A DNA stretch of 64,000 nt from Oikopleura dioica (GCA_907165135.1 OU015569.1:5022001-5086000); one strand, 5' to 3'; shown: positions 11,135-43,999, counted from the first letter of the stretch. The notes: generated from the letters alone by a model not told the origin. Program-made: numbers and translations.

Positions 11135-12523
11135 AGAAAGAGCCCAAAAAAGGACAAAACCGAGGAAAAAGTGAAAATCAAAGACGCGCATCTAACAAAA
11201 CACGACAACAACCTGCGATCAGCCTATGTGTCCGTTATCGGTGATGACTTTGTCTCAGTCGGACTTTCCTTCACTCTCGGCTCGCCTGAAAACACTGGAG
11301 GCGGATTTAGTAAGATAGAAATAAAAAATTACCCTTATCATAGTCTCAATACATGTTATAATATATATCAATATTTGAGGGAGGCTTTCAGTCCCACATG
11401 GTCTAGGGGTTAGGATTTCGGATTTTCACTCCGACGGCCCGGGTTCGATTCCCGGTGTGGGAGGACTTTTTCGCTCTTCAACGGAATTCTAGAACATTTT
11501 TTATAAATATAATAACGATGCTTATACTACCACCCAAGAAATAATAATTGATTCTAGTGCCGCGAATCGGAAAAGACGCCTATCAAAACCTCCCAAGTCC
11601 GGTGATTCTCCGTCAAGAAGATGAGCGCTGCGGACTTTGCGCGACAGAAACCATCATCTTCGGTGATTTCGCGTCAACCTCGAAGCAATGGTTCACAATT
11701 CTAGTTTTCTTTTTTTGGAAAATCCATTTATTGTAAAAGCTGTTGTTGACCATTCGCCACAGAAAATCGCAGAGCTGCTGAATGTGTCTCCACCTCAAGG
11801 CTCGTTCAAGGAAGATTCGCAATCGAAGAGTCAAGACTGGCTTGCCAACTGGAGCCTCTCAAATCAGTTCCGCAATGACAAGTTTGAACGCTCGGAGCTG
11901 TAGATTTTCTTTCAATAAATAAAATTGCGCACTTTATCCTCTCTTTCTTTTAGCAATTTGATAAGACCTCGAGGATTTTCGTTTTTTCTAGTTATTACTA
12001 ACGCTGATGATTATCTTTGCACAGTAGGCGATCGCTTCCAGCCTGGAATCGAACAGGTACAGCGCCCTCTTTTGGCAAGCTTTTCTTGTAAAAATGATTC
12101 GCAGGGGTTGATGACACAAAAATGCCAATTGCGACTCGGTCAAAAATCAAATCTGGAGAGGCCAAACTTGCCAAGCCCTTCGACAACCCAGACTGGTCGA
12201 AAAAGATGCCGCTTGAGTATATTTCTTCGGAGAGCCGGTCAATCTCGTTCTACCTGAAGAGCAAAACTGGCCCAGCGCCGGAGACTCCGTGTCTTCTGGA
12301 ACTCAACTCACCGGGCAATTCATCGCTCAAGCAGAATGTTCTCTGCCTCAGAGAATTTCTTTCACGAACAAAGCGAAGTAGCAACGATGATTCCTCAGAC
12401 AAGATTCCAGAAACCGCAACTGATGAATCTGACGATCAATCCTCCCAGATTGAATACACCTTGTTTCCAGCGGACAACAACAACAAGGCCTCAATTAGAG
12501 TCACCTATTCGACCAATTCTTAA
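11135..12523 (+). CDS. Multi-exon hypothetical protein hosting an intronic tRNA (may be continuous with 10476-11103)
   Basis: Exons ...GSPENTGGGF / MPRIGKDAYQNLPSPVILRQEDERCGLC... join in frame across the GT-AG intron 11310-11557; ends ...RVTYSTNS*. Confidence 0.55.
11392..11463 (+). tRNA. trnE: tRNA-Glu(TTC)
   Basis: TCCCACATGGTCTAGGGGTTAGGATTTCGGATTTTCACTCCGACGGCCCGGGTTCGATTCCCGGTGTGGGAG: acceptor stem TCCCACA/TGTGGGA, anticodon stem TCGGA/TCCGA, TTC anticodon, T-run terminator just downstream. Confidence 0.95.
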
Positions 12524-24140: not shown

Positions 24141-24330
24141 ATCGCTTCCGGCCTTTGTGGCTAAGATCAAGTGTAGTATCTGTTCTTCTCAGTGTGACAG
24201 CTGGGACCGTCCCTACTGGGACGTCTATTGTCACCCTGATTTTTGGAACTAGGGATGTAGTTAGGGGCTTGCTCCGCTCTTCCCACGGGTTGACTCGCTA
24301 TTGCAGTACCGGCGAGCTCGGCCCACTCCC
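24141..24330 (+). ncRNA. RNU2: U2 spliceosomal snRNA
   Basis: ATCGCTTC-CGGCCTTTGTGGCTAAGATCAAGTGTAGTATCTGTTCTT, Sm site GATTTTTGG (about 24238), GCTTGCTCC loop and ATTGCAGTAC 3' loop; possible PSE CACCATAAAGGCTAG near 24085. Confidence 0.93.
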
Positions 24331-24569
24331 CCACGGGGGAGAAACAATCAACCGAATTAAATATGAGAATTGAAAAACTCATTCTCTTAAGAATCGGCTA
24401 AGACTGAAAAGTTCGGCCCTTTCTCTTGCCCAAGAAATTCTGAAAAGAACATCTGGGTCTTCAAGTTGTAACTGAGACTGAAGAAAAAAACAAAGAAGAA
24501 GGATTTGATAAATGAAGTTAACTGTTTTATTTTTAACAAAGTTTTCCTTAGAAATAAATAAATGCAGGC

Positions 24570-26699: not shown

Positions 26700-27824
26700 A
26701 TGAACCATGGGGACCTGGGAAAGCTGGGAGAGAATCTTCTTCTCGAAGAATGTCGATATGGCGAAACAACGCGTCAACGAAGCGTTGTTTGAGAGACTTG
26801 ATGTTAATCTCGTCGGCGAGCGAACGGGTAAATAGAGGCGAAATACTATTTCGACGTTTTCTTAATACTAGAATTACTTTTATTCTTTTTCAGGTTTCAG
26901 CGCGCTGATGCTGGCAGTTGCCTTCAAGCATGACGACCGGTTGGAAATCGTGAAACGGTTGTTAGCTCGCGGTGCCAAAGTCAACGCCCAATGTTCCGAT
27001 AAGAATGTTTCTGCACTCCATGTTGCTGCTCAGAAAGGTTCTTTTATTTATTGACAAAGCAGGTTTTCATCAAATTTTCTTATTACAGGCGCGCTAGATT
27101 GTGTGACGCTCTTGCTGAAGCACGAAGCGGACCCGACTTTGGTTGATTCTGAAGGGCAAACACCAGGCGAAGTCGCGTACTCCGAGTTGATAGACGAGCG
27201 CAACCGGGTGCGGCAGGAGATCAAGGAGCAATGCTACTGCAGGCTGAAGCACGCGCGCGAAGATTGGATGCAGCGAAAACTAAAGCAGAGCGGCGCCACT
27301 CCTGAGTTTCGACGAAATGTCTTGCAGTCTGTTTATCGAGGTTCTCCGCCAGCAAAAGCCTCTAAGAAAAGAAACCCATCGCCAGAAATCTCGTCGACAG
27401 AAGCGATCCATGGTTCTGCGGATGAGGGCCAGAAGAGAACGCCGATTCGAAAGACTAACAAGGATTCCCCAAAACAAACTACCCGACAACGAGTTGCATC
27501 AGGAAACAGGAAAAGTCCTTACTTGCGGGGCTCGGCAACGGGTCGCCAGTCCCCTCATCAGCTGTACATTAACCGTCCGGGCTTGGGCAAGTTGGAGATT
27601 ATAAACACCCCCCGAAAAGTCGTCCTGGAAGACAATCTCTTTCCCTCTCCTAGATTGAGCTCAAGGAGCCGCAATCCATCTTCAAGACAGCGACACCAAT
27701 CAGATGCTCCCGATCCATTCTCACCTCGAGTTACGCCAAAACCATCGGTAATATTTACATACAAAATTTCAATGTTAATCCCTGTTCAAGGAAAAGTCCA
27801 ATCAAGAGGCGAAAAAGACGGGAG
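26700..27824 (+). CDS. ANKLE1: ANKLE1/LEM-3, 5' part (ankyrin repeats + start of disordered region), cut by the transposon
   Basis: GFSALMLAVAFKHDDRLEIVKRLLARGAKVNAQ, VSALHVAAQKGALDCVTLLLKHEADPTLVDSEGQTPGEVA; last exon piece EKSNQEAKKTG ends at the TIR. Confidence 0.85.
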
Positions 27825-28300
27825 CACTGGTAGAAGTCTCCAATTGTGGCAGGGTGAAAAAAAAATTTTTTTTTCTGAATGGCTCATCTGAAAGAGCTTC
27901 TCAAACTGTATAAAAAACGTTTTTACAGTCTGCCCAAATCTTTGAAATTTTCGAGATTTGGACTTGTCAGAGGTGGAAATTCCGAAATTTTAACTGCTCG
28001 TAGAGCAAAATTTTTCCATAACAAATTTTTTTTTCTATTTTTTTTCGGAAACTCTATAGTCGAATCTATGTGCTCGCGAAAATTGAAGCAGATCGGGCAA
28101 CATTTGGGCTGCAAAAATTTTTTTTTGAGGATTAGTTTTGCATTAATTTTGCAAATATAAAGCATATACTTTTATTTAATTACAAACTACAAAAAATTAA
28201 TCAAATAATGCTCTAAAGTCACTTGAGGTCATTTGAGGTCATCTGAGGTCATTTGAGGTCAACTTTTTTTTGCCGGTAAATTACATATTTTTATTTATTT
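27825..28300 (+). repeat. Left TIR with a (GAGGTCATYT)n array
   Basis: High-identity reverse complement of 40965-41439; AGGTCA at 28226, 28236, 28246 and 28256. Confidence 0.9.
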
Positions 28301-28794
28301 GAAACATGAAAACGATTATTTTATCAATTTTAAAAACAAAAAATAATTTTTATACCGTGCATATGTGTAAGATGCAAATAAAAAAGCACTTTAAACTAAA
28401 AAGAATGAGGCATGTTGTGTTTGTTCCTTCTCGTTTTGTTCTTCTTTTAAAAATCTTCTCAGTCAGAAAATCCAGGCATTCTGCGATGAAAATTTCCTTA
28501 ATATTTTTAAAATTTAAAAAATAAAGATACAAGCAATTACTTTTTTTTCTCGACGGCATAAGAGAGAGTTTAGAGCAGTCAAAGAAGATTGTTTGACGAT
28601 CTGAAACTTTAACACTGAGGATTTCGACCATATTTTTCATGTTTATAAATACCTTTCTTTCGTTTAGGAAGACTCCGTGGTTCTGGATAACTGTCATTCG
28701 CTGTTAAAATTTGTTTTTCGACGCTCTATTAAAAATAATTTAAAAGGCAAAGATTTCAGATAGTAAGATATTTGAAGTTACTGTAAAATATTCT

Positions 28795-30109
28795 TTATTT
28801 AAGGACTTGTTTGCTTAATATCCATTTTTCGAAAAGAATGATGCCGGGGGCAGGGTCCTTAAATCTAAGCTTCTATGAGTATCCTCAATTTTACCTGAAT
28901 AATTGAGACGATTAATTGACGAGCATAATTGTCTTTCAGATGAACTTTATCTGGCGAAAAAAAATGCTGTTTGAGGCTTCTGAAGAATCGGTACTCAAAA
29001 ACATTCAATTTTTTAGTTCTATTTCCAATTAAATGAAAACCTCTTCCTGTTTTACTCGATAATAGTTAGCTAAGCTAGGTACTTTTGCACTTAATATCTT
29101 CTTGAGCCATTTTTGTGTTGATTCTTCAATTGTTCTAAGCGGCTTAGCAAGTGGAAAAGGTTGAACAAAGAGGATTTTTCTTGCATTCGTAAACAGCGAT
29201 GTAAGGGTTCTATGTAAAACCTTTGAAAAGTTCTTTTATTTTTATTTTGTTAATTATCTTTATAATCGGACATAGATAAAAAAAAATGTTCTTGCGACGA
29301 TTTAGATAGAGAAAGAACTATCCTGAATTGCTTTATCTAGGTCAACATCTTGGAATGCCAGTGTTGATGCCTTCAGAATATTGTTGTGTCCAGCATAGAC
29401 TAGAACTGTTCCGGAGACGCGCGAATGACAATTTGTATGGCAATTTTCGCATAAAAATCTCTCCGGTAGATTTTCACCATAGTTCCAGGCATTCCGGCTC
29501 TTGATTTGAAGAATTGGTCTTCTTTCCTCATCGCAGATTTGTCCTACTTTCATCAGGACTGCTAATTCAGTTAAACAGGCACCAGAATATGACGTAATAA
29601 TCCAGTTTTTTTTCTTTAATTTGTGTTTTCCGAAATATTTTATCTAAAGTGGTGTTTGAATAATTTCTTACTTTAGCTAATGAAACACATATATAAGGGG
29701 ACTCCGCGGAAAACCAAAAGCAGGTCGCACCCTCATATTTTGAAAATTTTTACGCGTCTACTTAAAGATCTCAAGATGCTCATTCAGAATCGCGATTAAA
29801 AATTGTATCGGGGGCATCGGGATATAGATATGATGGCCGCCGAAAAGAGGCCCACAAACCATAAAATCGAATTTTTCTCGAATTCCCAATACCCCCGATA
29901 TGATGTTTATTCGCGATTCTGAACAGGCATATCAAGAGCTTTAAGAAAATGTGTTCAAAATTATCTCTCCATAAGGACGCCCCCATTAAAGTATTTTTTC
30001 CGCGTAGACCTAACTGTTCTATCATCTTTTTATATTCAAACAGTCCTGTGAATCTCCGAGAAGGAAATTTGTTTTTTCGTATCCGAAGAAACATGGTCGG
30101 CGCCAGCAC
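28795..30109 (-). CDS. Transposon-borne SGNH/GDSL-hydrolase-like protein, multi-exon; 5' end uncertain
   Basis: Spliced WIITSYSGAC (block II-like), VLVYAGHNNI (block III-like), FFSPDKVHL (block V DxxH); clean 47-nt and 37-nt GT-AG introns; stop at 28795; block I Ser not firmly located. Confidence 0.55.
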
Positions 30110-30194
30110 TCTCGTTCATGCCCTTTGAACCATAAAGACTCCATAACTAATGTATGATATTAAGGATAGAACATGGATATTATGGATAGAACAT

Positions 30195-30577
30195 CGGCTG
30201 AGCGCGGCTGCCCGTTTAGCGCCCCGCCATGACCGTTTTTTCAGAGACCCGTCAAATCTGAACGGTAAATGATTTTATCTTTATTATTTTTGCTTTATGA
30301 TCATCAAAGCCTATTCTTTTATACAAACAATTTGAAAATATCAAAATGGGATAACTTGGTCAAAGTCTCGGAATGAGAGCGACTCTTTCAAAGCCCTCTA
30401 TAAAAATCTAAAGATTTATTTTGAAACTCAGACTAGAAATAAAAGGAAAGTAGAAGTGAAATAGAAGACTAAAAGTGAAGAAGTCGGAGCTCTACAAAAT
30501 CGAAGAATATAATTCATCGTTCAGATTAGACGGGTCTCTGAAAAATAGATAACGACGGGGCGCTAAACGGGCAGCCG
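30195..30577. mobile_element. MITE nested in the large element
   Basis: About 70-bp TIRs GGCTGCCCGTTTAGCGCCCCG...AGAGACCCGTC.AATCTGAACG and their reverse complement at 30517-30577; AT on both flanks. Confidence 0.75.
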
Positions 30578-31145
30578 ATCTTATATTTTACGCTTAAGAT
30601 GGAGAAAACAATTTTTCAATTAACTAGTTTTCCATTTTTCTAACATAGATATTGCGCTCATTTTTCTGACCTGTGTCGAGGCATCACCCATGTTCCGTTA
30701 TGAGAACATACAGACAGTTTGAATCGATGATAAATATTAAATATCTTCTGTGTTTCAGGATTTGATTGAAGAATGGCTGTTTTATTTTATAGTCACACGG
30801 GCAATAAAAAAAATTATAAGCATTCTGAATTCAATGATTTGATTTCTTCTTTCTTTTGCCTTTCTTTTACTCACAGAAAAGAGAATTTCAAAAACAAGAA
30901 TTAACAATTAGGAATATTTGTATTTAACAACGAGGAAAAAAAATGTAATCGTGATATTTCCAGATCAGGAAAAACGGACTCTTTTCGATTCAGCATTGAC
31001 TTCACTTGAATGCTGTGCGACTCTTTTTGATGGAGTTGTTTTATTGCACACCCAATGACTTAAATTTATGAACTGTATTTATTAATATTGCCATACTTAA
31101 TTTTTTTGAGTTGATTTTCCTTGATCTCAAGAATATTCGACGATG

Positions 31146-31520
31146 TTATTTCTGGTGTTCCAGCTTTGAATTCTTGCTCAATTCTTTAATAATTTTTATA
31201 AATAATTTTAAGCAACAAATAATTTTAAAGATTTTTTTTAACCTGTTGAGCACATAGACCGCGCAATCACGATTCGTTTGCGGAACATTTTCGCGTTTTT
31301 TCTTCCAAGGGCCCTGATCATTCAGAATTTTTCCAATAGTATCAAGAAGTTTTTTTTTCGAACTATCAATGGCGTTTTGATAATTTCCAATAGCCCCATT
31401 TGTATCATAGACAGTAACTGAGCGAGATTTGACATTAACGATCAAGAGTGCCGCGTGGTTTTCATCTTTTGATGACAGCAATAATGGTGCACAAATTTTT
31501 TTCGTTTCTTAAGGCTTGGG
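31146..31520 (-). CDS. Ulp1/SENP-type (peptidase C48) cysteine protease domain
   Basis: KKICAPLLL...NHAALLIVNVKSRSVTVYDT...VPQTNRDCAVYVL retains H, D, Q and C of the C48 active site. Confidence 0.75.
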
Positions 31521-31820
31521 TCATTATAAGTGCCTTGAGTCATGTTTCCGACGGAAGATGTAGGATATGAGCAAAAATCTGTTTCTCGAATTTTAAATTC
31601 GGACAAGATAACGATTTTGACCCCGGACTTTGGAAATTTCCGCTTTCAGAGAAGATTTTGATATTTCGCTTAAGAAAAACAGAAAATTAGGTTTTAAAGC
31701 TCTAGAGTCACACCTTTGGCGGGCCACAGGGTAGAGGATACTGACTGTTTTATTTGTATTTTCTAATCTTAAGAGCGCAATCTTAATCAGGGTTCTCTAG
31801 AGCATATAGCCCTGTTTTAG

Positions 31821-34800
31821 TTAATGACGTTCGGTCGTTAAAACCCTTAACTGAGCTTGAATATCTGTTGCAGAGTAGACGTAATCGCTGATTGTTTGTT
31901 TGTTTGATAATTCTCGAAGATTGACGGGTCTTCTTTGAGGCTGATTTTTATTATCAATAATTATTGTTCCGTCTTTCTGTCCGATTTTTCTGGAAAATGT
32001 GTTTCCAGAATTTCGAACACAGAGACTAATTTTTCCACTGGAACAGAGATCGCAGCTGCAGACTATGTCTTTTGCATAAAGAGCTCCTCTTGCTGCGTCG
32101 AAGTTTATCATACGAATCGATTTAATTGACGGTATGTTGAGATTTACGGAAGATTTCGTGGTCTCTTCATTTTTATTCTTGAGAATGGCATATTCTCGCC
32201 CAGCAAAATTTTGTTTTGCGCGTTTTTCTTTTTCTTCTGTCCGCAGCTTCTGCTCATTTTCCTTCAAGAATCCGAGGCATTCATCAAGAGTACCACAGCG
32301 ATTTACAAGTTTCGCATTTTTTATCGTGGTAGCGCAGTGACTATGGGCGCCATCGACGAGGCCTCAGAATTCTAGAATTAGTTTCGCGGAAAAAATACCT
32401 TTTCCATGGCGGCTGGTTTTGAAAATATAAGTTCTCCGCAGGCCATCGTTATTTGAAATGGCATGGTGAAAATGTTCCCTCGATTTGAATTCAGAGCTCG
32501 CATTATGTAAAACAGGGTTCGGGAAATTCAAAGATCTTATAAATCCGCAAGATCGAAATAGACCATTACCTACCGACGAGCCATAATGGAATTATCGTCA
32601 ACATTAAAATGCAAATTTTAACCCTTTCGAACCCTTTCAGAAATCCTGTTAATGACTGTGAAATTTATGTTTCGATTTTTAAAATTTTCAACAATCATTT
32701 TTTCCGCCTCAATCGGCGCTCCGGCAAATTTCTTCTCCATAAGAAAATGAAAGTATTGCATTTTTTGTATTTCGTTTTCATTCCATCGAGCGACCGCCGT
32801 TAAAACGTTACAATTCAATCCAAGGCGCCCGGCTTGAAGATATTCATGCTATTTTTAGGGTTCATGTAAACAAGCCAAGCGAAATTAATGAATTTTCTGA
32901 TCCCGAACTGTGACGCAGTATTATTTTGAAGAACAAACGTCGAGGCGTAGTCAAGCTTTCCACGGGTCTCAGAAAGTTCTTGCTTATAGACACACTTGAC
33001 GTATTCATTCGATACAATTTAAGACCCTCGGCTCAAGATGAAGACTCCCTGGCTTAACATCTCCATGTTCATATACTTTAAGATCTTCTTTATTTCTGCT
33101 CTTGTCGATGCTATGGGCAAGTGTTTCTCTCGTCATACTTTTAAGCTGATCGAAGAATTGCCGTATTGGCATTTTACCGCGAGTTTCGCTACCAGAAACA
33201 AAAGCTGTCTCAGCTTTAACTCCAGCTTTGAGGAGTTCGAATCTGTCAAAGGCAACGGTCTCGTCAGGATGCATTTGTACGACTTTTTCGAATATTTCTC
33301 GATCAAAGTCTTCCATAAATTCATCCGGACCAACGCAACTCTTGTGAGTGCAGTCGCTGCAGGATGTTGAATTTTTTGGGTGAACAAAGCAACTTGTCTT
33401 CTTTTTACGATCAGTGACACAATATTGTTTGTCCGTTGTTGCACAGGTGCTCCTTTCCAAGATTTCTTTGAAATTGAAGCCTGCCAATGCGGGAACGTCT
33501 TATGGAGGGGGGCTTTTTTATCCTCAAGATCTTGTTAGGACCTGTTAACGGATTCTGCGATGAACTGTGATATCTAAGAAAAGAGTCTCCTGTCCTAATT
33601 TCTTTCCAAGGCTCTGCGCAGCCTTCTCATAAGTTCCCTTGTTAAGGCAGGACTAATAAATGGTCTTAATCATATCATGGTGTGATTTCCATTACAGTGA
33701 CAATAAATTTATAATAATTCACGATTTAAGACCCTATCTCGCAGGCGCATACAACTTGCGTTGTACGTGAGGGCGGAATGTAGTAAAATGGAGTCATACT
33801 TTTGAACTCCTTCAAAGTTAGGTGTGTAAGCTGTGGATATTCACTAATAAATTCAGCGTGAAGTTCTTCAAGAGTTTTTTTCAGTATTCTTCTCGAAGTG
33901 GTCAGAGACTGAGTCGTTGGTCGTAGCAAGTCAATTTTATGGGTTCGCGTATCACATTTTTCACGAAGATATTTCAAGACAGTGCGGTCAAGAATTAAGG
34001 ATTCCCTTAGAGTTGCTTTCTTTTGACTCGGATCAATGAAAGCTCTCTCGTCAAGAAATGCGTCTATTGCCGAAACAAATATAGGATTATAGACATGATG
34101 GAGATCGTAAAATTCATTAATTTTATAATCCAATCTAATGAAATATTCGCGGATTTGATCTGATTGAAATTGGCATAATTTTCCCCAGATTCTTTTTCAT
34201 CTGCAAGCTTCTTCAGTTTCTTTTTCTAAAGCGAGGTCGCTCAACTTTCCGATATTTATAATAGGGTGTTTTTCCATTTACTCTATCAATATTGTTTTGG
34301 ACTTTTTGACCGGTCCTTAATTCCAAATGTCGAGGAAAGAACATGAATTCTTTCTTGCGAATTATTTTCTTTTAATACCGCTTTTAAAATCACGTTCTCA
34401 TTTTTCCAAGTTGATTTGTCAAGCATATTTTCATTATTTCACTAGAATTATAATCTTTTATAAATTGTTCTATTCTTTTATAAAATTTTCTCTTCACAAA
34501 CCTTGGTAAAAGCTGCATTTTGATGAGAGTATTTTGATTCTGCTCACTCAGGTTTTGCATTTCACTTTTAATTTCCTCGGTTGTTTTCAAAGTTGACAGA
34601 GCTTCCAAAATACTTGGAACGGAAGATGTACTGGCAATTTCTTCAAGTGCACCTATCAAGTTTTCTTTTTCAAGTTCAAGCCGCTCAGCGGGATTTTCAT
34701 CTATCCAATCAGGATCAGAGTCATCTTCCTCAGAATTCGTCGTTTTATTCTTTTTAAGAATAGAGCGAGGCTGAATGTTTAGTTCCTGCTCTTGGTTCTG

Positions 34801-35510
34801 TTCAACACTTCCTTCCTCTTCTCTAGAGGCGCGTGATATTTTTTCGAGACGAACGTCAGCATCCAAATGCTCTATCGTTGATTTTGATAGAATCCCGACT
34901 TCTTGAGGCATAAAAAGCATCTGCTCACTTGCCTCGACATTTTTCGTTAACACTGTAGGCAAATTTTTTGATGAATGCGGTGCCTCTTGATTTTCAAGAA
35001 GATAAGGCTCTTCAGATGATTTTTGCACCCTGACAGGTTCTTCTCTAACAGCTTGAACTAGACCGGAGCCGAAGTCATCTTTGTGATTACTCACGTGGTC
35101 TTCAATATGCTCTAATGGGATCCTCTGGCAGCATATAAAGCAGGTTGGCAAAACGCATTGTCTGATCTCATGCTGTCGTTTTACCCGGCCATTCTGTTTT
35201 GTTGGACGACTTCCACAGCATTTGTAGGCATCTTTTCTCTTCAATAGCTTCACATCATAGTCTTTGCTTGTGACGGAAGCCGTACAGTTACCAAGGTGAT
35301 TATTGTATAAATCCAAAGAAGAAAAGTGCTTTTTGCAATCTTATTTTTGATAAGAACACAGCATACTTAGACAATCCTGATAATTATTATCTTTCCTGTG
35401 CAGACTCGACCAGAGCATATTTTAACATGATCATGAAATGCTGAGGCAGTAGAAGATGTTGGAAAATTATTTCCACATTTACGACAACAAGAGTATCCTT
35501 TGATGGATTT
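31821..35510 (-). CDS. CMC/CACTA-type DDE transposase with N-terminal zinc fingers, multi-exon, possibly decayed
   Basis: RILKKTLEELHAEF...EFKSMTP...VCACE; LDYASTF; NASSEFKSR...F; TSRHGKG/LVDG; C-terminal VCSCDLCSSG; N-terminal C2H2-like CRKC...FHDH and CFICCQRIPLEHIEDHV; apparent in-frame stops at about 33654 and 35350. Confidence 0.8.
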
Positions 35511-35534
35511 TAACAGCGCTCAAGCTAAAAAGCT

Positions 35535-35605
35535 AGACAAGTCCTGGGATTGAACAACGGTTTCCCGCGTCCGGCCGGGGTGTGCTACCACTGGATCAAC
35601 TCGCC
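35535..35605 (-). ncRNA. Degenerate tRNA-like (Pro-like) Pol III unit or SINE head inside the transposon
   Basis: GGCGAGT...ACTTGTC 7-bp acceptor stem, A-box-like TGATCCAGTGG, B-box-like GTTCAATCC, TTTTT at 35527-35531; D, anticodon and T stems mispaired. Confidence 0.5.
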
Positions 35606-35776
35606 GAGATCTCTATCGAGATTTTGAAATGATACTCTGAACGGTCGGGCCTGAGCGCTGCTAGGACCCATCACCTTTATAATTGGACAATTTAATCGAT
35701 GGACGAGACGTCGGTCCATTGTATCTATTGGGTTGTAAGCGGTCGTTTGGGCAGACAAGTAAAGATAGAAAAATTT

Positions 35777-37463
35777 TTAGGTAAAATATTTTTCATTCTT
35801 TGAAGGTCTGTTCAAAAGGCCGCCTACCACCCTTTTTGTATTAAGCTCTTTAACTAAAAACTTTGCAAAAAGTTTTTCTGCTTCTTTCGCCGTAAAAGCG
35901 GGAGAAGATTTCAGCTTAAGAATGTTAGAAAATTCTTAAAAAAAAACGATTATACCTTTGAGAGAATATCACCTAATTTTGACTTTTTCTTTGACGATAT
36001 TATCTTTGTCACATCATTGATTATTTTCGTGGCAAGTTTATCAGTCATTGATAGAAAACTAAGCTCTCTTAGAGAGTCTGCAGACCGTTGATCGGTGATT
36101 TCGACCGATGCGGCGATCTCGCGGAGCCTACTTCTTGCCAGAGCTTGCCTTAAGCCTGTTGTTTTTGCTTTTGATTCTTTCTTGAACGCGTTTCTTAGGG
36201 AACGAGTTGAAGAATTTGTTCTGGTTAATGGAAAATTCTTCGTCCGACTGCACTCAAGAAGACTTGGTCTATGAGTGCTTGGTTTGCGTGCGATTTTTGG
36301 AAGCGTGATCGTGTGACATTTTCAGTTTTCGTAAGCGCCTCAAGGTGACCATTTTGCGATTGTTTTATCATTTCCATCGTTTCTTCGTGATCTTGCAGAT
36401 ATTGATTCTCCGGTGTGTCCATCGAATTTTGAATTTCTGTCCCGTTGACATGATTGTAAGTGTAGTCGGAATCTTGTATATCCTCACTCACATTTTCATG
36501 ACCATAACTTTGCAGGTGCGAAGAGCAATCTGCTTCCGCTCCTAATTCATTCACTGAAGACGTCGATAATTGAATTTCTGAATCCTCATCAATCGTAAGA
36601 GAACTTATATCTGGCACAGAAGGCGCTCGTTCGTTCATTATGTCGAAATCTGATGAAGATGGTACACTTGGAACGCATCCGTTCATTATGTCGAAATCTG
36701 ATGAAGACGGTACACTTGGAACGCATTCGTTCATTGTGTTTATATGGTCAAGATCAGGGTCTCGAAAAATACGAGGCCAGGCGGCAGCCACAACCCACTC
36801 ATACTCTTTTGGTTTCCACCTCTTAGAGACCCACCTCCGCTGGCCGCCAGGGTTCAGCGGCCACTTGGTGATTCATCTTGCGTTAACGCGACCCAGTCCG
36901 AATTTTACATTATCCGAGGCTGAAATTCGGTCTCCAGTGGAATCCAGCGGCCAGCGGCTGGCTTTGCCGCCAGAGCGTGGATTCGAAAAATGAATGGAGG
37001 CCGTAAGCGAAGGGCGCGCGGAGTATGAATAAATCCTCGCCGCCGCATGGCTGCCAATTTTTCGAAACCCTGGTCAAGATTCATCACACTTGGAACTCGA
37101 CCATAAAAACCTCCGTTAAATCAGTCAGTTCAGAGTTATTCGCCTGAACCTCATCGTGGGAATAAACAGAAATGGTGTCAATATTAAGAATTGACGGAGC
37201 TGTGCCAAGCGGTTCATTTAGATTATCAAGTCTCTCGAGATCAAGAACACTGAAATGCAAAATTAACTTTAATTCAATCAATCTTGAACGAATAAAAACC
37301 TTGGTACTTGAAGAAGATTAACAGGAGCTTCATTGGGGTCAAAGTCATAGTTAGACACAGCATCAATAGAATCGATATTCATGACGCTTGGCGCTGGACC
37401 AAGTGCGCATAAATCATCTGGTGGTGGTTCAACAGGCATCATAGAGACGCCAAACTCGGACAT
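35777..37463 (-). CDS. Transposon cargo protein: acidic repetitive N-terminus, basic helical C-terminus, multi-exon
   Basis: Exons MSEFGVSMMPVEPPPDD..., 16-aa repeat MNxCVPSVPSSSDFDI (48-bp unit, about 36630-36740), ...AEKLFAKFLVKELNTKRVVGGLLNRPSKNEKYFT*. Confidence 0.55.
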
Positions 37464-37660
37464 CGTCTAAATACTTTAACAATTAATCCTTATCCAAGAT
37501 TTTATCGAACAAATTGCTTAAGGGTAACAATCACGTAAAAAATAAGGAAAGAGTGAAAGAAAAGGATAAACATCGTAGAACATTGACATCATAACAGAAC
37601 TTCTCATCCACGACGACGACTTAAAAAAGAAAAATGAACTCCACATCATATAATTCGATT

Positions 37661-39050
37661 TTACCACAAGTTTTTTGGAAACAACGATGTGAGAGAGACA
37701 AATTTTCCACACAGTAATTCGTAATAACCCTGATGTCGTCCACCTTGATTGTAAGATCGTCTTATTCTTTGTTGGAGACGTAGCTCATCATATGCACGAT
37801 GAAGTTGATATATTCTGTAGTCTAAACACCTCGTCATTTCCAAAACATCTATTGTTTCTTTAGATATTTGATTCCAATTTGAAGGCTTGTCAAGTTTTTG
37901 GAAGAAAAAACTTTTAACCAATCGTTCAGCTTTTAATCTGAGCCATTCTTTCGAAGAGATCGTCTTAAATATAACAGCAAGCTCAAGAGGCCTCTTAACC
38001 ATAAATTTTGCAATTTCTCGATCGTCTAGATCAGAGCTGGTTATTTGATAACTGTCGTCACTCGAAAAGAAAAAGAATTAATTTTTAGAGAAATTTTGGA
38101 GACTTTTAAAGCGCTTACTTCTATTATCTTTTTTCTAAAGCTTTCTGAAGATGATTGAACGAGACGAACGCGAAAGATAGAAAAACGACGCGTAAATATT
38201 AATTCGCACACTAAAATTTTTTTGACAGATCATAGGACGCGAATTCGACAGCCATGATCCCGATTATAATCGAAAATTCATATGATAAGCGGTACCGCAC
38301 ATTCAAAAGAGCAATTTATGACAGGCCCGCCCTGAAAATGGAAAACGAAAAACGACTCGACAGTCATAGTGGCTTCAGTTCTTTCCAATATATCTTCTAA
38401 TGCCCTGTACATTTGCTTTGGAGCAAACTCAGGGAGTTGGCTTTGCACGACACGAGACATCATAAAGGTAAGATTCGCCATGGTCCCCGAGCCATCATTT
38501 GACACTTCGAAGGAATTAAGGAATCGTGGGATTTTTCCAAGGTATTGTTTTCGAGCATCCATGGTTTTAACTAAGCAGATCAATTTTTATACTTTTGAAG
38601 CAATAATCAACGATCAGAAAGCAGAAAAAGCGGGTGTGCGCTCCGCGCCTGTCTTAAAGGAAACCCGCAACTTTCTAGAATTGATGGCCTTGAGGGCGTT
38701 GTTGAATTCAGGTTATAGGGACTTTTGCTGATTTCTAAAATGGTCTTTATAGCCTCGATGGCCATGATGTCCTTGATGGCCTTGTCGACAATCTCTTTTT
38801 CTTTTATCGCCAGAGAGAAATGAAAAAAATCGGTCAAAACGAAAAACACAAAGAAACCGACTTAAGCCGACCACCCACCGACCAAACCCCACCACCGATC
38901 AAATCAAAAAAATCCATGGTAGGATCGTTCGGTGCCAATATAAACCCCACCATTTCCGACTAGGTCGAGTTTTTGGTCGGGTCGATGGCCTTGATGGCCA
39001 TGCTGGCCGTGATGGCCTTGATTGCCTTGTTGACAATTTCAGGTTCATCC
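37661..39050 (-). CDS. Further transposon cargo ORF(s) of unknown function
   Basis: Open segments 38002-37661, 38583-38278 and 38849-38607; internally duplicated EIV(D/N)KAIK.I.A motif at about 38800 and 39040. Confidence 0.35.
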
Positions 39051-39098
39051 CTATTAAAGGTGTAACGAACGTAAGTGATCTTAATTCTCGGTCCGAGC

Positions 39099-40310
39099 CA
39101 GAGTTGCAGATTTTTGAAAATTTTTGTGAGCTGAGCTAGCTGAGCTGTGGTCGAAATTGAGCTGAGCTGGCCCCTTGAAAAGCAACTGAGCTGAGCTGGA
39201 TTTTTCGAAAAAATGAACTGAGCTGAGCTGAGCTTGGGCTAATTTGAAAATTTTTGAGCTAAGCTGAGCTGACAATTTTTTTAAGCTGAACTGAGCTGAG
39301 CTGGCCCCTTGAAAAGCAACTGAGCTGAGCTGAATTTTTCGAAAAAAATGAGCTGAGCTGAGCTGAGCTTGGGCTAATTTGAAAATTTTTGAGCTGAGCT
39401 GAGCTGACAATTTTTTTAAGCTGAGCTGAGCTGAGCTGGCCCCTTGAAAAGCAACTGAGCTGAGCTGGATTTTTCGAAAAAATGAGCTGAGCTGAGCTGA
39501 GCTTGGGCTAATTTGAAAATTTTTGAGCTGAGCTGAGCTGACAATTTTTAAGCTGAACTGAGCTGAGCTGACCCCTTTGAAAACAACTGAGCTGAGCTGA
39601 GCTGAGCTGGATTATTTCGAAAAATTTGAGCTGAGCTGAGCTGAGGTTTATCTGTTAGTTTTTGAGCTGAGCTGATGATTTTTCAAACTGAGCTAGCTGA
39701 GCTGAGCTTACAATTTTTTCAAGCTGAGCTGAGCTGAGCTAGCTGAGTTGAGGTTAAAATTGAGCTAGCTGAGCTGATCTGACTTTTCTCGAAGAACCAT
39801 TGAGCTGAGCTGAGCTGAGCTGGCCCCCTTGTAAAGCATCTGAGCTGAGCTGAGCTTGGGCTTATCTGAAAATTTTTGAGCTGAGCTGAGCTGACAATTT
39901 TTTAAGCTGAACTGAGCTGAGCTGACCCCTTTGAAAACAACTGAGCTGAGCTGAGCTGAGCTGGATTTTGTCGAAAAATTGAGCTGAGCTAAGCTGGGGT
40001 TTATCTGTTAGTTCTTGAGCTGAGCTGAGCTGATGATTTTTCAATCTGAGCTTGCTGAGCTGAGCTGACAATTTTTCAAGCTGAGCTGAGCTGGGCTAGC
40101 TAAGTCGAGGTTAAAATTGAGCTAGCTGAGCTGAGCTGACTTTTCTCGAAGAACCATTGAGCTGAGTTGAGCTTGCTTTCTTCAGAAAAATTAAGCTGAG
40201 CTGAGCTGAGCTGACCCTCACCTCGAAATCGCTGAGCTGAGCTGAGCTGAGCTGTAGCTCATCTAGCTCATATAGCTCACCTCAGCTAGCTCACAAAATT
40301 TGTAACTCTG
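39099..40310. mobile_element. Non-autonomous hAT element filled with GCTGA pentamer satellite
   Basis: TIRs CAGAGTTGCAGATTTT / AAAATTTGTAACTCTG; 8-bp TSD GTCCGAGC / GTCCGCGC; interior is (GAGCT)n in higher-order units of about 120 bp. Confidence 0.8.
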
Positions 40311-40964
40311 GTCCGCGCTATTCCGATTTACGGAAAATTGTAAAATGAGGGAATTATAATGGCCTAAATTCCCTTTTATAATTTTAGACTTGTAATAGAT
40401 ATATCTGTTTAAAAAATAAGTCAAACGATAATTATAATAAATAAGTATAAGAAGGACCACCGAACATACTGTTTTTTCAGAATTTTTCTGCGCGAGGCCC
40501 ATCTAGGCCAAAACCGTGGGGGAAGTCTTTAAAGCATACCTTCTGTCTTCGTTTGAATTCTACTTTCTTTGGAGTCAGTCGTTGGCAGGATTTCTTCTGT
40601 TTTTGATTTTTTCTGCAATTAACAAGCGTCTTATATAATTTTAAGAATAAATATATATATTTAGTATACCTGTCACGGGTATCGAAAATTATTAACAATC
40701 TTTCTCTTAGCTTTCTCTTCTTCTCTTTCAATTTTGTGTGTTTCACAGAATTAACTTTCTCGAAGTGAACTGCCAGCCAGAAATTAGTTTGGAAATTTTT
40801 TCATACTGTGATTTTGATTGATGCATCCATTAAATAATCATTAATGAGCGAGGTAGTTCCGGAATCGCGAGCGCATGTGTACACTTCACCGTCGATCGAT
40901 ATTGAAACAAAAATTTTCAAAATCAAATGAGCAATATTTTTGCTCAAAATTATTATTTTCAAAA

Positions 40965-41439
40965 TTAAAAAAATAAAAAATGTAATTTAACGGCAAAAAA
41001 ATTGTTCTCAAATGACCTCAGATGACCTCAGATGACCTCAAATGACCTCAAGTGACCTCAGAGCACTATTTGATTACTTTTTGTAGTTTGTAATTTAATA
41101 AAAGTATATGCTTTGTATTTGCGAAATTAGTGCAAAACTAATCCTCAAAAAATTTTTACAGCCCAAATGTTGCCCGATTTGCTTCAATTTTCGCAAGCAC
41201 ATAGATTCGACTATAGAGATTCCAAAAAATTAAAAAAATTTTGTTATGGAAAAATTTTGCTCTATGAGCAGTTAAAATTTCGGAATTTCAACCTTTATCA
41301 AGTCCAAATGTCGAAAATTTCGAAGATTTGAGCAGACTCTAAAAACGTTTTTTATACAGTTTGAGAAGCTCTTTCAGATGAGCCAATCAGAAAAAAAAAA
41401 ATTTTTTTCGACCTGCCACAATTGGAGACTTCTACCACT
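40965..41439 (-). repeat. Right TIR with a (TGACCTC)n array
   Basis: Reverse complement of the left TIR; five TGACCT copies at 41013-41058. Confidence 0.9.
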
Positions 41440-43999
41440 AGAAATCACGGCGCTGCCACGGCCAACTTTGACAGAAAGCAAAAATTCGCCGAAGAGTGCC
41501 TTTGTCTACCCTTCACCTGAAAAACCGCCTCTTCAGGAGCGTTCGAATAATCAAACACATGATTTGACCGAAGCTTCAGAAGATCACAGTAGATGCTTGT
41601 TCGACGATTCTGATAAGGAGCCTTCTGTCATCGAAAAGTCTCATCAAGAAGAAAAAGAAAACAGTCCTGAATCTGCGACCCCTCGTTCCTTTCGCGAATT
41701 CTCCACGCAAACTCCTCCATATTTATCACCGGTTTCTGAGGTCTTATGTCCTTCTATTCCGCCAGTGACTGTAACGCCGATCGCCCCTGCAACCTCTTCC
41801 GGGACCACTCTAAAGAGGCAAAACGAGTTCAGTTTACGAAGCAAGCCCCTGAAACTTCCAGTTCCAAAAGTTCCTGCCGCCCTTGAAGAGACCATCGACA
41901 ACGACTCTTTAAACAAATCAAAGAGCGAAAATCTGCAAAATCCAAGCAAAACTAAAGATATCCCCGACCCTACTTGTGCGAATTCTGAAAGCTCCGTCGT
42001 ACTCAAGCACTCCCTTAACGATGTTAAATCAACACTGCCTAAATTTCAGGGATCCATAACGGAGACAAGTTTGTTTGAGTACTTTGAAAAGTCGCTTGTC
42101 CTGCCAAATTTTGCCGCGTGCGAAGATCCTTCAGCTAATTTGACGGATGAAAGCTCGTCCTCCGAACATGCTCGCAAATCAAAAACGTCCAGCAGTTCCA
42201 AAAGCGTGCGGCGTATGTCTTCGAAAGAAGGAAGATGTGAGAGGAAGGAAGTTTCCAAACTAGACAACACGCAAAAGTCTGAAATCAAGGAGGTCGACGT
42301 GTCATCAGATTACCATAATAACGAAACATTTGCTCTCCAAGGCGGCTCCAGAATAGAAACTTCAAGAGAAGAGAACCCAGCAACGCCCACTGAAACTACC
42401 TGCGAAACACCGGGAAAGACAATTTCGCGAAAATCTTCCACTACCTCCTCGTCATTCAGTTTCCCACCACCACCGGACTTTATCCAATCGATAGTGGTCC
42501 ACCCTTCGCCTGAGAAGAGAACTCCCAAGAAGCAGAAGACCGGTGACGTTTCCAAGAACGCCAATCTAGACAAATCTGGTTTAGCAACGGTGCTCTTTGA
42601 AACAAACAACAGCGCCCTGCCCTCGATGATGCCGGGGTCCATCATCGACTTGGTCAATGTTCCCACGGAGCCGCCTCCTCCCTCCTTGATGATGACACCA
42701 GTCAAGGAAGATCAGATTCTCGCGGAAGATCATCCTGCTAATTTGACAACAAGCGAGGGGGCACAAAGCTTCCACCTGGAATATTCATTCTCGTCGATGG
42801 AAAACTCGATTGAAATCATAGAAGACGGAAAAAGTATTGCGCGAAAAGTGGAGAATCTCTCGGCTACAGAAGAGCAGCCGAATCTCAATCTTAGGAAAGT
42901 TTCATTTTCCGTGAATCGAATCATTCACTCATGAATTTTTATTTCTGAAAACTCGCAAATGATCAATAATGGCGAAAATACCCGAAATCGTTTGCGAAAC
43001 ATTTTCTCAATTAAATTTTGATGAATGAAAAAATTGAAACTACGAAAAGCTCTAGCTCAGAAGTAGGCGAAATGGACGATACAAAGCTGCGACTTGAGCT
43101 GAGAAAGTTCAAGGTTTGCGTGCCTCCATGTCTCACCGATGCAGCCAGATGTCGATTCAAAGGCAAATTGCGAAAAATGCGCGATGTTGGAGTCGAATTT
43201 TCAGCCGAACTTATCGAAGCAATTCACACAGTGGATATTCGTGGGCCACCTACTGGGGAGAATAATTTACGAAACAAAGTTTGCAACGATTCCCGCACTC
43301 CTGGAAAAGATCCCAAACGGTAACGATAAGGTGCAAAAAATTTCAAGCACCACCGTCTTTCTTTAGATTTTTCAATTACCTCCTCCTTGATCCGCGGAAG
43401 ACAAACAATCTGACAAGAAGAGTTCAGCAAAATCCGAATCTGTCCAGTGTCGATATTTTGAAATGTTTCATGAAATCAATTTTCTACGTAGGAAAAGGTA
43501 CATTAATTCGTCAAACTTTGATTCGAATGTAGAATTCTAGGCACTGGTACTCGGGCGCACGCGCACATCAAGGAAGCGATGGACTTCAGTTCCAAGAAGC
43601 CTGGTTACAAGATGAAACTGAAAACCATTCAAGAGATTTTTGCTACGCCGAGGTCGAATGTTCAACCCAACGAGGAGCAAAACTATGGCCTGCTGGTTTG
43701 CGAATTCTCGAAAAATATTAGCAACGCTCAGGCGCTCAATCAAGAAGCTGCTATGATCGAAGGAATGGCTTCATTTATCTCCGTTTTTTAGTTATTTGAA
43801 TGAATTATGAAAAAGAACTTACGAGTGATAGCCTCCAAAAGCAATCAATATCGAGAACTTGACGAATTATAAACGCGAGAAGTTCTCGTTGAAATGGAAA
43901 GACGAAGACATTCGCGAGCTCGGGGCCGAGTTGCTCTGCCAGGCCTGCAGAATGTACCTCATTGAGAACGAGCATTTTCTGTATCCTTCACATGTGTAA
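41440..43999 (+). CDS. ANKLE1: ANKLE1/LEM-3, 3' part (disordered region, LEM domain, GIY-YIG nuclease)
   Basis: LEM: MDDTKLRLELRKFKVCVPPCLTDAARCRFKGKL; GIY-YIG: FNYLLLDPRKT...FMKSIFYVGKG...AHIKEAM...EAAMIE...LTN...ELGAELL...LIENEHFLYPSHV*. Confidence 0.9.

Follow-up and report, generated by a model that had tools for sequence, protein, structure and literature searches.

What kind of mobile element lies between the long inverted repeats of one locus of Oikopleura dioica, and which enzymes does it encode? The question is raised by the interval 27825-41439 of a 64,000-nucleotide stretch of this genome (GCA_907165135.1 OU015569.1:5022001-5086000; G+C ~40%), which was analysed at its full length and is referred to here as the window. 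An earlier note, made from the sequence alone, had described the interval as a large CMC transposon with five to six co-oriented, intron-containing genes, in which a transposase travels together with a SUMO protease, an SGNH hydrolase, an acidic repeat protein and an RNA polymerase III (Pol III) unit. The present analysis covers one 64-kb window and one insertion, and protein tests were made on each exon piece. According to it, the segment 27829-41436 is probably a DNA transposon of 13.6 kb that moves by cut-and-paste and belongs to a very divergent and unclassified family.

Ends of the element and insertion site

The 13.6-kb element bounded by terminal inverted repeats (TIRs) is genuine. Its inverted ends, at 27828-28299 and 40967-41437, measure ~470 bp and share 92-93% similarity, three small indels lying between them, and in the end-to-end alignment perfect complementarity begins at GGTAGAAG. 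The terminal 26 nt are identical at both ends and have no other occurrence in the window (0 expected). About 400 bp inside each end lie arrays of TGAGGTCA in exact 10-bp phase, with four copies on the left and five, inverted, on the right. Ten matches to this word were counted in the window against 1.35 expected, and nine of them fall within the subterminal arrays. Together, the long TIRs, the uniqueness of the termini and the subterminal arrays bear out the original view of a large TIR-bounded DNA transposon. The arrays are likely protein-binding sites. Their AGGTCA half-sites (28224-28261 and 41013-41060) are spaced by 4 nt in a DR4-like manner, which is the classical geometry of nuclear-receptor response elements; by analogy, they could double as enhancers beside serving as transposase-binding sites.

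Immediately outside the perfect TIR, the bases read ACT on the left and AGT, as reverse complement, on the right. This pattern of match, mismatch and match is the one predicted for a direct repeat with one copy reversed, and ACT is therefore read as a candidate 3-bp target-site duplication (TSD). The alternative is a 2-bp AG duplication accompanied by imperfect ends.

The element splits a long host open frame, the flanking parts of which run at 27103-27824 and 41441-42934. These interrupted frames are of low complexity, and no Pfam domain was found in their exons. A GT inside the left end (27830-27831) and an AG outside the right end (41440-41441) are supplied at the boundaries of the element, and joining at these two sites would link the host frames in phase (...DGST joined to EITALP...). 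The host might thus be able to splice out the whole 13.6-kb insertion as an intron. Five DNA runs of O. dioica, taken from several samples and two studies, contain 81-99% of the sampled words of 27401-33400, and a run labelled as another species contains 28% of them.

A transposase-like protein fused to a SUMO protease

Inside the element, 15 stop-free segments of at least 100 amino acids (aa) lie on the minus strand versus four on the plus strand, and shuffled sequence yields on average 1.4 for each strand; the co-oriented coding noticed earlier is therefore real. The main gene occupies the minus strand from ~35.5 to 31.1 kb, has roughly 11 predicted short introns and encodes one protein, whose parts are, from the N-terminus, Cys/His zinc-finger-like motifs (35519-34900), a transposase-like core and a CxCxxC cluster, with a cysteine protease of the Ulp1/SENP type at the C-terminus. 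Of the five to six genes counted earlier, only the common orientation of the coding segments holds, since transposase and protease form one gene and the other open reading frames (ORFs) lack homologues.

The protease is recognised by the Ulp1/C48 family PF02902 at 31149-31481 (E 1.9e-6; 28.3 bits against a gathering cut-off of 20.7), in agreement with the SUMO-protease domain first proposed. It is the sole above-cut-off Pfam match among ~35 ORF pieces, most of which were scanned at E<=1 or looser and the first ten at E<=0.1. Its motifs HAALL, VYDT, PQT and RDCAV align with HWCL, YYDS, PQQ and SDCG of human SENP1, whose H, D, Q and C are the catalytic His, Asp, oxyanion Gln and Cys. By its motifs, the SUMO protease is intact-looking.

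An exhaustive HMMER search of 1.84e9 protein representatives, queried with the 164-codon exon at 33008-33499, returned a single cluster (P0001) with 39% identity, which derives from four short metagenome contigs (L001-L004, ENA). Between 34725 and 31239 of the window, ~840 residues are collinear with the gene of this relative. Pieces of the N-terminal part of the main gene share 31-45% identity with the relative's exons, and the longest stretch, which continues to 32636, shares 30% with large gaps. Direct reading of the relative's sequence shows a 388-codon exon and two canonical introns of 42 and 74 nt. This exon starts with DYAST, which contains the first conserved Asp, and passes through ITDNCAREFKSK, FKTSKHGKGRVDG and the CxCxxC cluster to beyond the Ulp1 His. 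As the core and the Ulp1 catalytic His share one exon in the relative, Ulp1 is the C-terminal domain of the transposase-like protein and not the separate cargo gene it had been taken for. The relative itself has Asn in place of the Ulp1 catalytic Asp.

The variants of the relative differ by 20 synonymous versus 4 non-synonymous changes, with a divergence of 9% in introns versus 2.5% in exons. The relative's gene is therefore maintained by selection, and these substitution patterns indicate that the selection is purifying. The variants are 0.7-3.4% apart, and their short introns are of the classical form GTAAGT...TTTTAG; the relative comes perhaps from another appendicularian. Further searches added little. 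Seeded homologue searches with the 164-aa exon, the relative's 370-aa ORF and the relative's core region gave nothing, or the query or the relative alone; scans of metagenome and viral contigs by protein and by TIR gave no match, and Atlas searches with the 164-aa exon and the SGNH-like exon were uninformative.

Introns of the main gene

The introns of the main gene are backed by comparison with the relative and not by RNA, and to this extent the earlier statement of intron-containing genes is upheld. Their very small size is in keeping with O. dioica as the host. In-frame stops of the window fall where the relative's exons run uninterrupted, and a 36-nt GT-AG intron separates HGKG from LVDG at the point where the relative reads HGKGRVDG. 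For the catalytic core, the best collinear models obtained by enumeration of introns require GG-AG introns. One of these, a 56-nt intron at 32904-32849, yields LDYASTFVLQNNTASQF joined to HEYLQAG... and is collinear with the relative within one residue; another candidate is placed near 32633-32497. Introns of the G*-AG type are reportedly present in O. dioica, according to the genome paper of 2010. When they are admitted, an in-frame model of the main gene can be predicted throughout. The idea of frameshifted catalytic exons was dropped, since the enumeration gave in-frame GG-AG intron models. Additionally, the motif VSNEY was rejected as the first Asp block, because it falls in an intron by comparison with the relative.

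Fold and affinities of the core

The core carries a D..D..D pattern (DYAS ... ITD/ISE ... HGKGxVDG), which is conserved in the relative and has ~39 residues between the last two positions. The ESM Atlas model of the relative's ORF has a predicted template-modelling score (pTM) of 0.54. Its nearest Atlas structures are eukaryotic hypothetical proteins and DUF7869 proteins, with template-modelling (TM) scores of 0.51-0.55 over 228-250 residues, followed by weaker structural matches to rve integrases and to bacterial ISAzo13 transposases (for the latter, query-based TM 0.38-0.43 and row-based TM up to 0.64). In a feature search of the Atlas, 70 of 100 hits were of the DUF7869 type, with scores near 0.72 (0.72-0.73). 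By fold, the relative's core comes closest to DUF7869 and ISAzo13 proteins, with which it shares the short ~39-residue spacing of the second and third carboxylates, but sequence does not connect them, as no match to PF25273 (DUF7869) was obtained even at E<=10 from window pieces or relative, nor any to PF07592 (ISAzo13). Bacterial ISAzo13 is kin of the eukaryotic Zator superfamily. The Atlas matches by fold and by feature are to be taken as leads, not as proof.

The best reading of the core is a transposase of the DDE/DDD type, because of its setting between TIRs, the N-terminal zinc-finger-like motifs, the D..D..(39)..D arrangement and the precedent of Ulp1-fused transposases. TSDs measure 4 bp in Ginger1, 8-10 bp in MULE elements, reportedly 3 bp in Zator, which is the length of the candidate TSD here, and 4 bp in Sola; the last value would set Sola apart from the present element, in which a D..D..D pattern like that of Sola is possible. 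By 2017, no Pfam domain had been reported to match Sola or Zator (PMC5751038). Ulp1 domains at the C-terminus of transposases have been described in Ginger1 and Mutator-type elements of hydra, lancelet and plants (PMC2836005). The association of Ulp1 with a transposon that the earlier note had singled out therefore stands, in the form of a fusion whose architecture was already known. With Ginger1 and Mutator the element shares the C-terminal Ulp1/C48 domain on the transposase, the introns and the build of an animal TIR element of several kb. However, the integrase-like or MURA-like cores of these elements are found by Pfam, whereas neither rve nor MULE matches here, and the TSDs differ.

Conflicting evidence and competing explanations

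Several observations weigh against reading the locus as a cut-and-paste transposon with a DDE/DDD-type enzyme. No Pfam or NCBIfam family matched the core, whether of the window or of the relative, even at E<=10, the families considered including CMC, KDZ/Zisupton, MULE, hAT, rve and ISAzo13. The AlphaFold check that the earlier note had proposed for the products was carried out on the relative's exon and proved uninformative, with a predicted local distance difference test score (pLDDT) of 38; the RNase-H fold thus rests on the Atlas model mentioned above. In all ten G*-AG intron models, the second carboxylate is either Glu (RISE) or removed, and in none of them is it Asp. Moreover, 18 older RNA runs contain next to no words of 31000-36900, and no RNA run is listed as holding the region. 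A single insertion is visible, so that three bases are all that defines the TSD and the exact ends. Simple removal with ACT as TSD, or with AG, does not bring back the host frame, and of the dozens of in-frame G*-AG host intron models that span the insertion site none is demonstrated. Removal of exactly 27825-41439 does fuse the two flanking host open frames in phase; since this restores the frame and yet many spanning intron models exist, the host frame cannot fix the TSD.

Some of these points would suit another explanation, namely that old inverted repeats happen to flank an Ulp1-domain gene that is the host's own or domesticated, or that the unit died long ago and is now a shell; the selection on the relative would then be due to a host function. 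A host gene would be expected to show the low ratio of non-synonymous to synonymous change found in the relative, and the explanation also accommodates the lack of a sequence match to any transposase family, the window copy without Asp at the second position and the lack of any RNA run listed as holding the main gene. It is nevertheless unlikely, as the gene lies inside a TIR unit with subterminal arrays that interrupts the frame of another gene, the predicted fold leads toward DDE-type enzymes, and C-terminal Ulp1 on transposases is a known architecture (PMC2836005).

No better founded is the assignment of the transposon to a divergent member of Zisupton/KDZ. Fusions of transposase and Ulp1 are known in Zisupton, a superfamily named for its zinc finger, SUMO protease and transposon, and the present protein has the same order of zinc fingers, transposase, CxC-type cluster and Ulp1, together with a multi-exon gene and a chordate host. 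Zisupton elements are multi-exonic and marked by the KDZ transposase domain PF18758 (PMC9297572), but scans of the pieces and of the relative, even at E<=10, did not detect that domain. Furthermore, the TSD of Zisupton is 8 bp (PMC12730594), and the flanks GACGGGAG and GAAATCAC have no 8-bp repeat in common at any offset near the ends.

A CMC (CACTA/Mirage/Chapaev) transposon with a CMC transposase and with Ulp1, SGNH and the others as separate cargo is very improbable: the short candidate TSD (readable as ACT, 3 bp, or AG, 2 bp, beside 2-3 and up to 5 bp in CMC), the length of the element, its subterminal repeats, which are typical of En/Spm-like elements, and a left end readable as CACTG are compatible with it, but no CMC-type family (e.g. 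Transposase_21) was found on the ~35 ORF pieces or the relative, DYAS, TDNxxxEFKSK and HGKGxVDG differ from the CMC blocks, Ulp1 is fused and not cargo, and the supposed CACTA-type terminus breaks down into a flanking C, ACT and G that the right end (...CCACTAG instead of ...CAGTG) does not mirror, the termini of the element being GG...CC and not CA...TG. The CMCT clade, in addition, has C(2)C and H(3-4)H motifs located between its second and third carboxylates (PMC12730594), whereas inspection of the aligned core showed neither motif in the 39 residues between ITD and VDG, the CxCxxC cluster lying further downstream with no His pair. The divergent cut-and-paste transposon with a fused protease therefore remains the preferred reading.

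Other proposed cargo and features

The positions of all features are collected in Table 1. Among the other proposed cargo, the ORFs at 28868-30109 contain, in order, look-alikes of the SGNH blocks (GNS, SGA, GHNN and DKVH). No exon piece of this region has support in Pfam, PDB or Atlas, and the putative block I falls within a 75% palindrome (29744-29962). It is possible but doubtful, on this pattern of motifs, that the product of 28.9-30.1 kb is the SGNH hydrolase suggested earlier. The gap that separates the SGNH-like ORFs from the end of the Ulp1 exon holds a pair of 72-nt inverted repeats (30205-30577; 85% complementary, arms 229 nt apart), which looks like a small nested miniature inverted-repeat transposable element (MITE).

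Of the proposed acidic repeat protein, ORF pieces with a shared motif were recovered, but these have no homologues; a 48-bp tandem repeat (36632-36739) lies within the same ORF region. The GC-rich island is positioned where an unusually long intron of these ORFs would fall. Its fold has a z of -3.5 on the minus strand versus -2.7 on the plus strand, and the minus-strand fold includes a long G·U-dependent closing stem. This island is probably what had been taken for a Pol III unit, a claim that did not hold, as neither a tRNA nor a B box was found inside the element, nor any Rfam match at E<=1. The long stop-free SSAQLSSA frames in the array of GAGCT pentamers are artefacts, not genes. Upstream of the element, the window contains a full-length U2 small nuclear RNA gene (24141-24331; 156.8 bits) and a tRNA-Glu(TTC) gene (11392-11463).

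Table 1. Coordinates of the element and of the features within it
Feature	Position	Strand	Basis
Left copy of candidate 3-bp TSD ACT	27826..27828	.	End-to-end alignment
Left terminal inverted repeat, starting 5'-GGTAGAAGTCTCC	27829..28299	+	End alignment, repeat search
Left subterminal array, 4 x TGAGGTCA (AGGTCA-N4-AGGTCA)	28218..28261	+	10-bp phase
SGNH-like candidate gene read from 4-5 ORF pieces, with two typical introns (GT-AG, 44-45 nt)	28868..30109	-	ORFs, intron model
Last main-gene exon, carrying H, D, Q and C of the Ulp1/C48 catalytic half	31149..31508	-	PF02902; SENP1 alignment
Exon that carries LVDGAH... and the CxCxxC cluster of the transposase-like core and leads into the Ulp1 start	31845..32362	-	180-codon open frame; 36% identity to relative over 218 aa
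Three small catalytic-core exons: LDYAST (first Asp), LTAVARW block, RISE/...SEFKS (second carboxylate), FKTSRHGKG	32399..32955	-	Collinear with the relative's single exon
N-terminal two thirds of main gene, with zinc-finger-like Cys/His motifs, an acidic linker and a conserved pre-catalytic stretch that ends in ...SLHLEPR	33028..35519	-	ORF pieces, relative
ORF pieces of acidic repeat protein, with six occurrences of [AV]PS[VI]..N[IL]D spread over three frames	35953..37466	-	ORFs
GC-rich island of ~300 nt, stable minus-strand fold, ending in T5	36765..37066	-	Folding
Minus-strand ORF pieces of 102 and 138 aa, no function by match	37664..38586	-	ORF and Pfam scans
Tandem array rich in GAGCT pentamers, 1.1 kb, ~135-bp higher-order unit	39100..40260	.	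Repeat search
Right terminal inverted repeat	40967..41436	-	End alignment, repeat search
Right subterminal array, 5 x TGAGGTCA	41007..41060	-	10-bp phase
Right copy of candidate TSD ACT	41437..41439	.	End-to-end alignment

Possible mechanism and significance

Taken as a transposon, the element would work as follows. The core, as the putative RNase-H-fold enzyme, would bind the TGAGGTCA arrays and the termini, and would cut and paste the element, duplicating 3 bp. SUMO conjugates may be the target of the protease, either in the course of transposition or to counter SUMO-dependent silencing. The remaining co-oriented ORFs would be accessory or captured genes, possibly co-transcribed with the rest. 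The multi-enzyme toolkit envisaged at first was not demonstrated, and what the element offers instead is one fusion gene and a set of unexplained ORFs.

As a more tentative proposal, the element and its relative may belong to an undescribed eukaryotic cut-and-paste lineage, possibly at the level of a superfamily. Such a lineage would be characterised by a DUF7869-like D-D/E-D enzyme fused to Ulp1, ~470-bp TIRs, phased AGGTCA arrays, a 3-bp TSD and co-oriented accessory genes in the intron (perhaps operon) style of the host. In the Okinawa assembly of O. dioica, 44% of the repeats are unclassified (PMC8008620). The genome of Oikopleura is among the smallest of animals, and a 13.6-kb DNA transposon there is worth cataloguing, as is an enzyme for which 1.8 billion protein representatives yielded one relative. 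The element would add another independent fusion of transposase and SUMO protease, and thereby strengthens the idea that de-SUMOylation may aid transposition or counter SUMO-dependent silencing.

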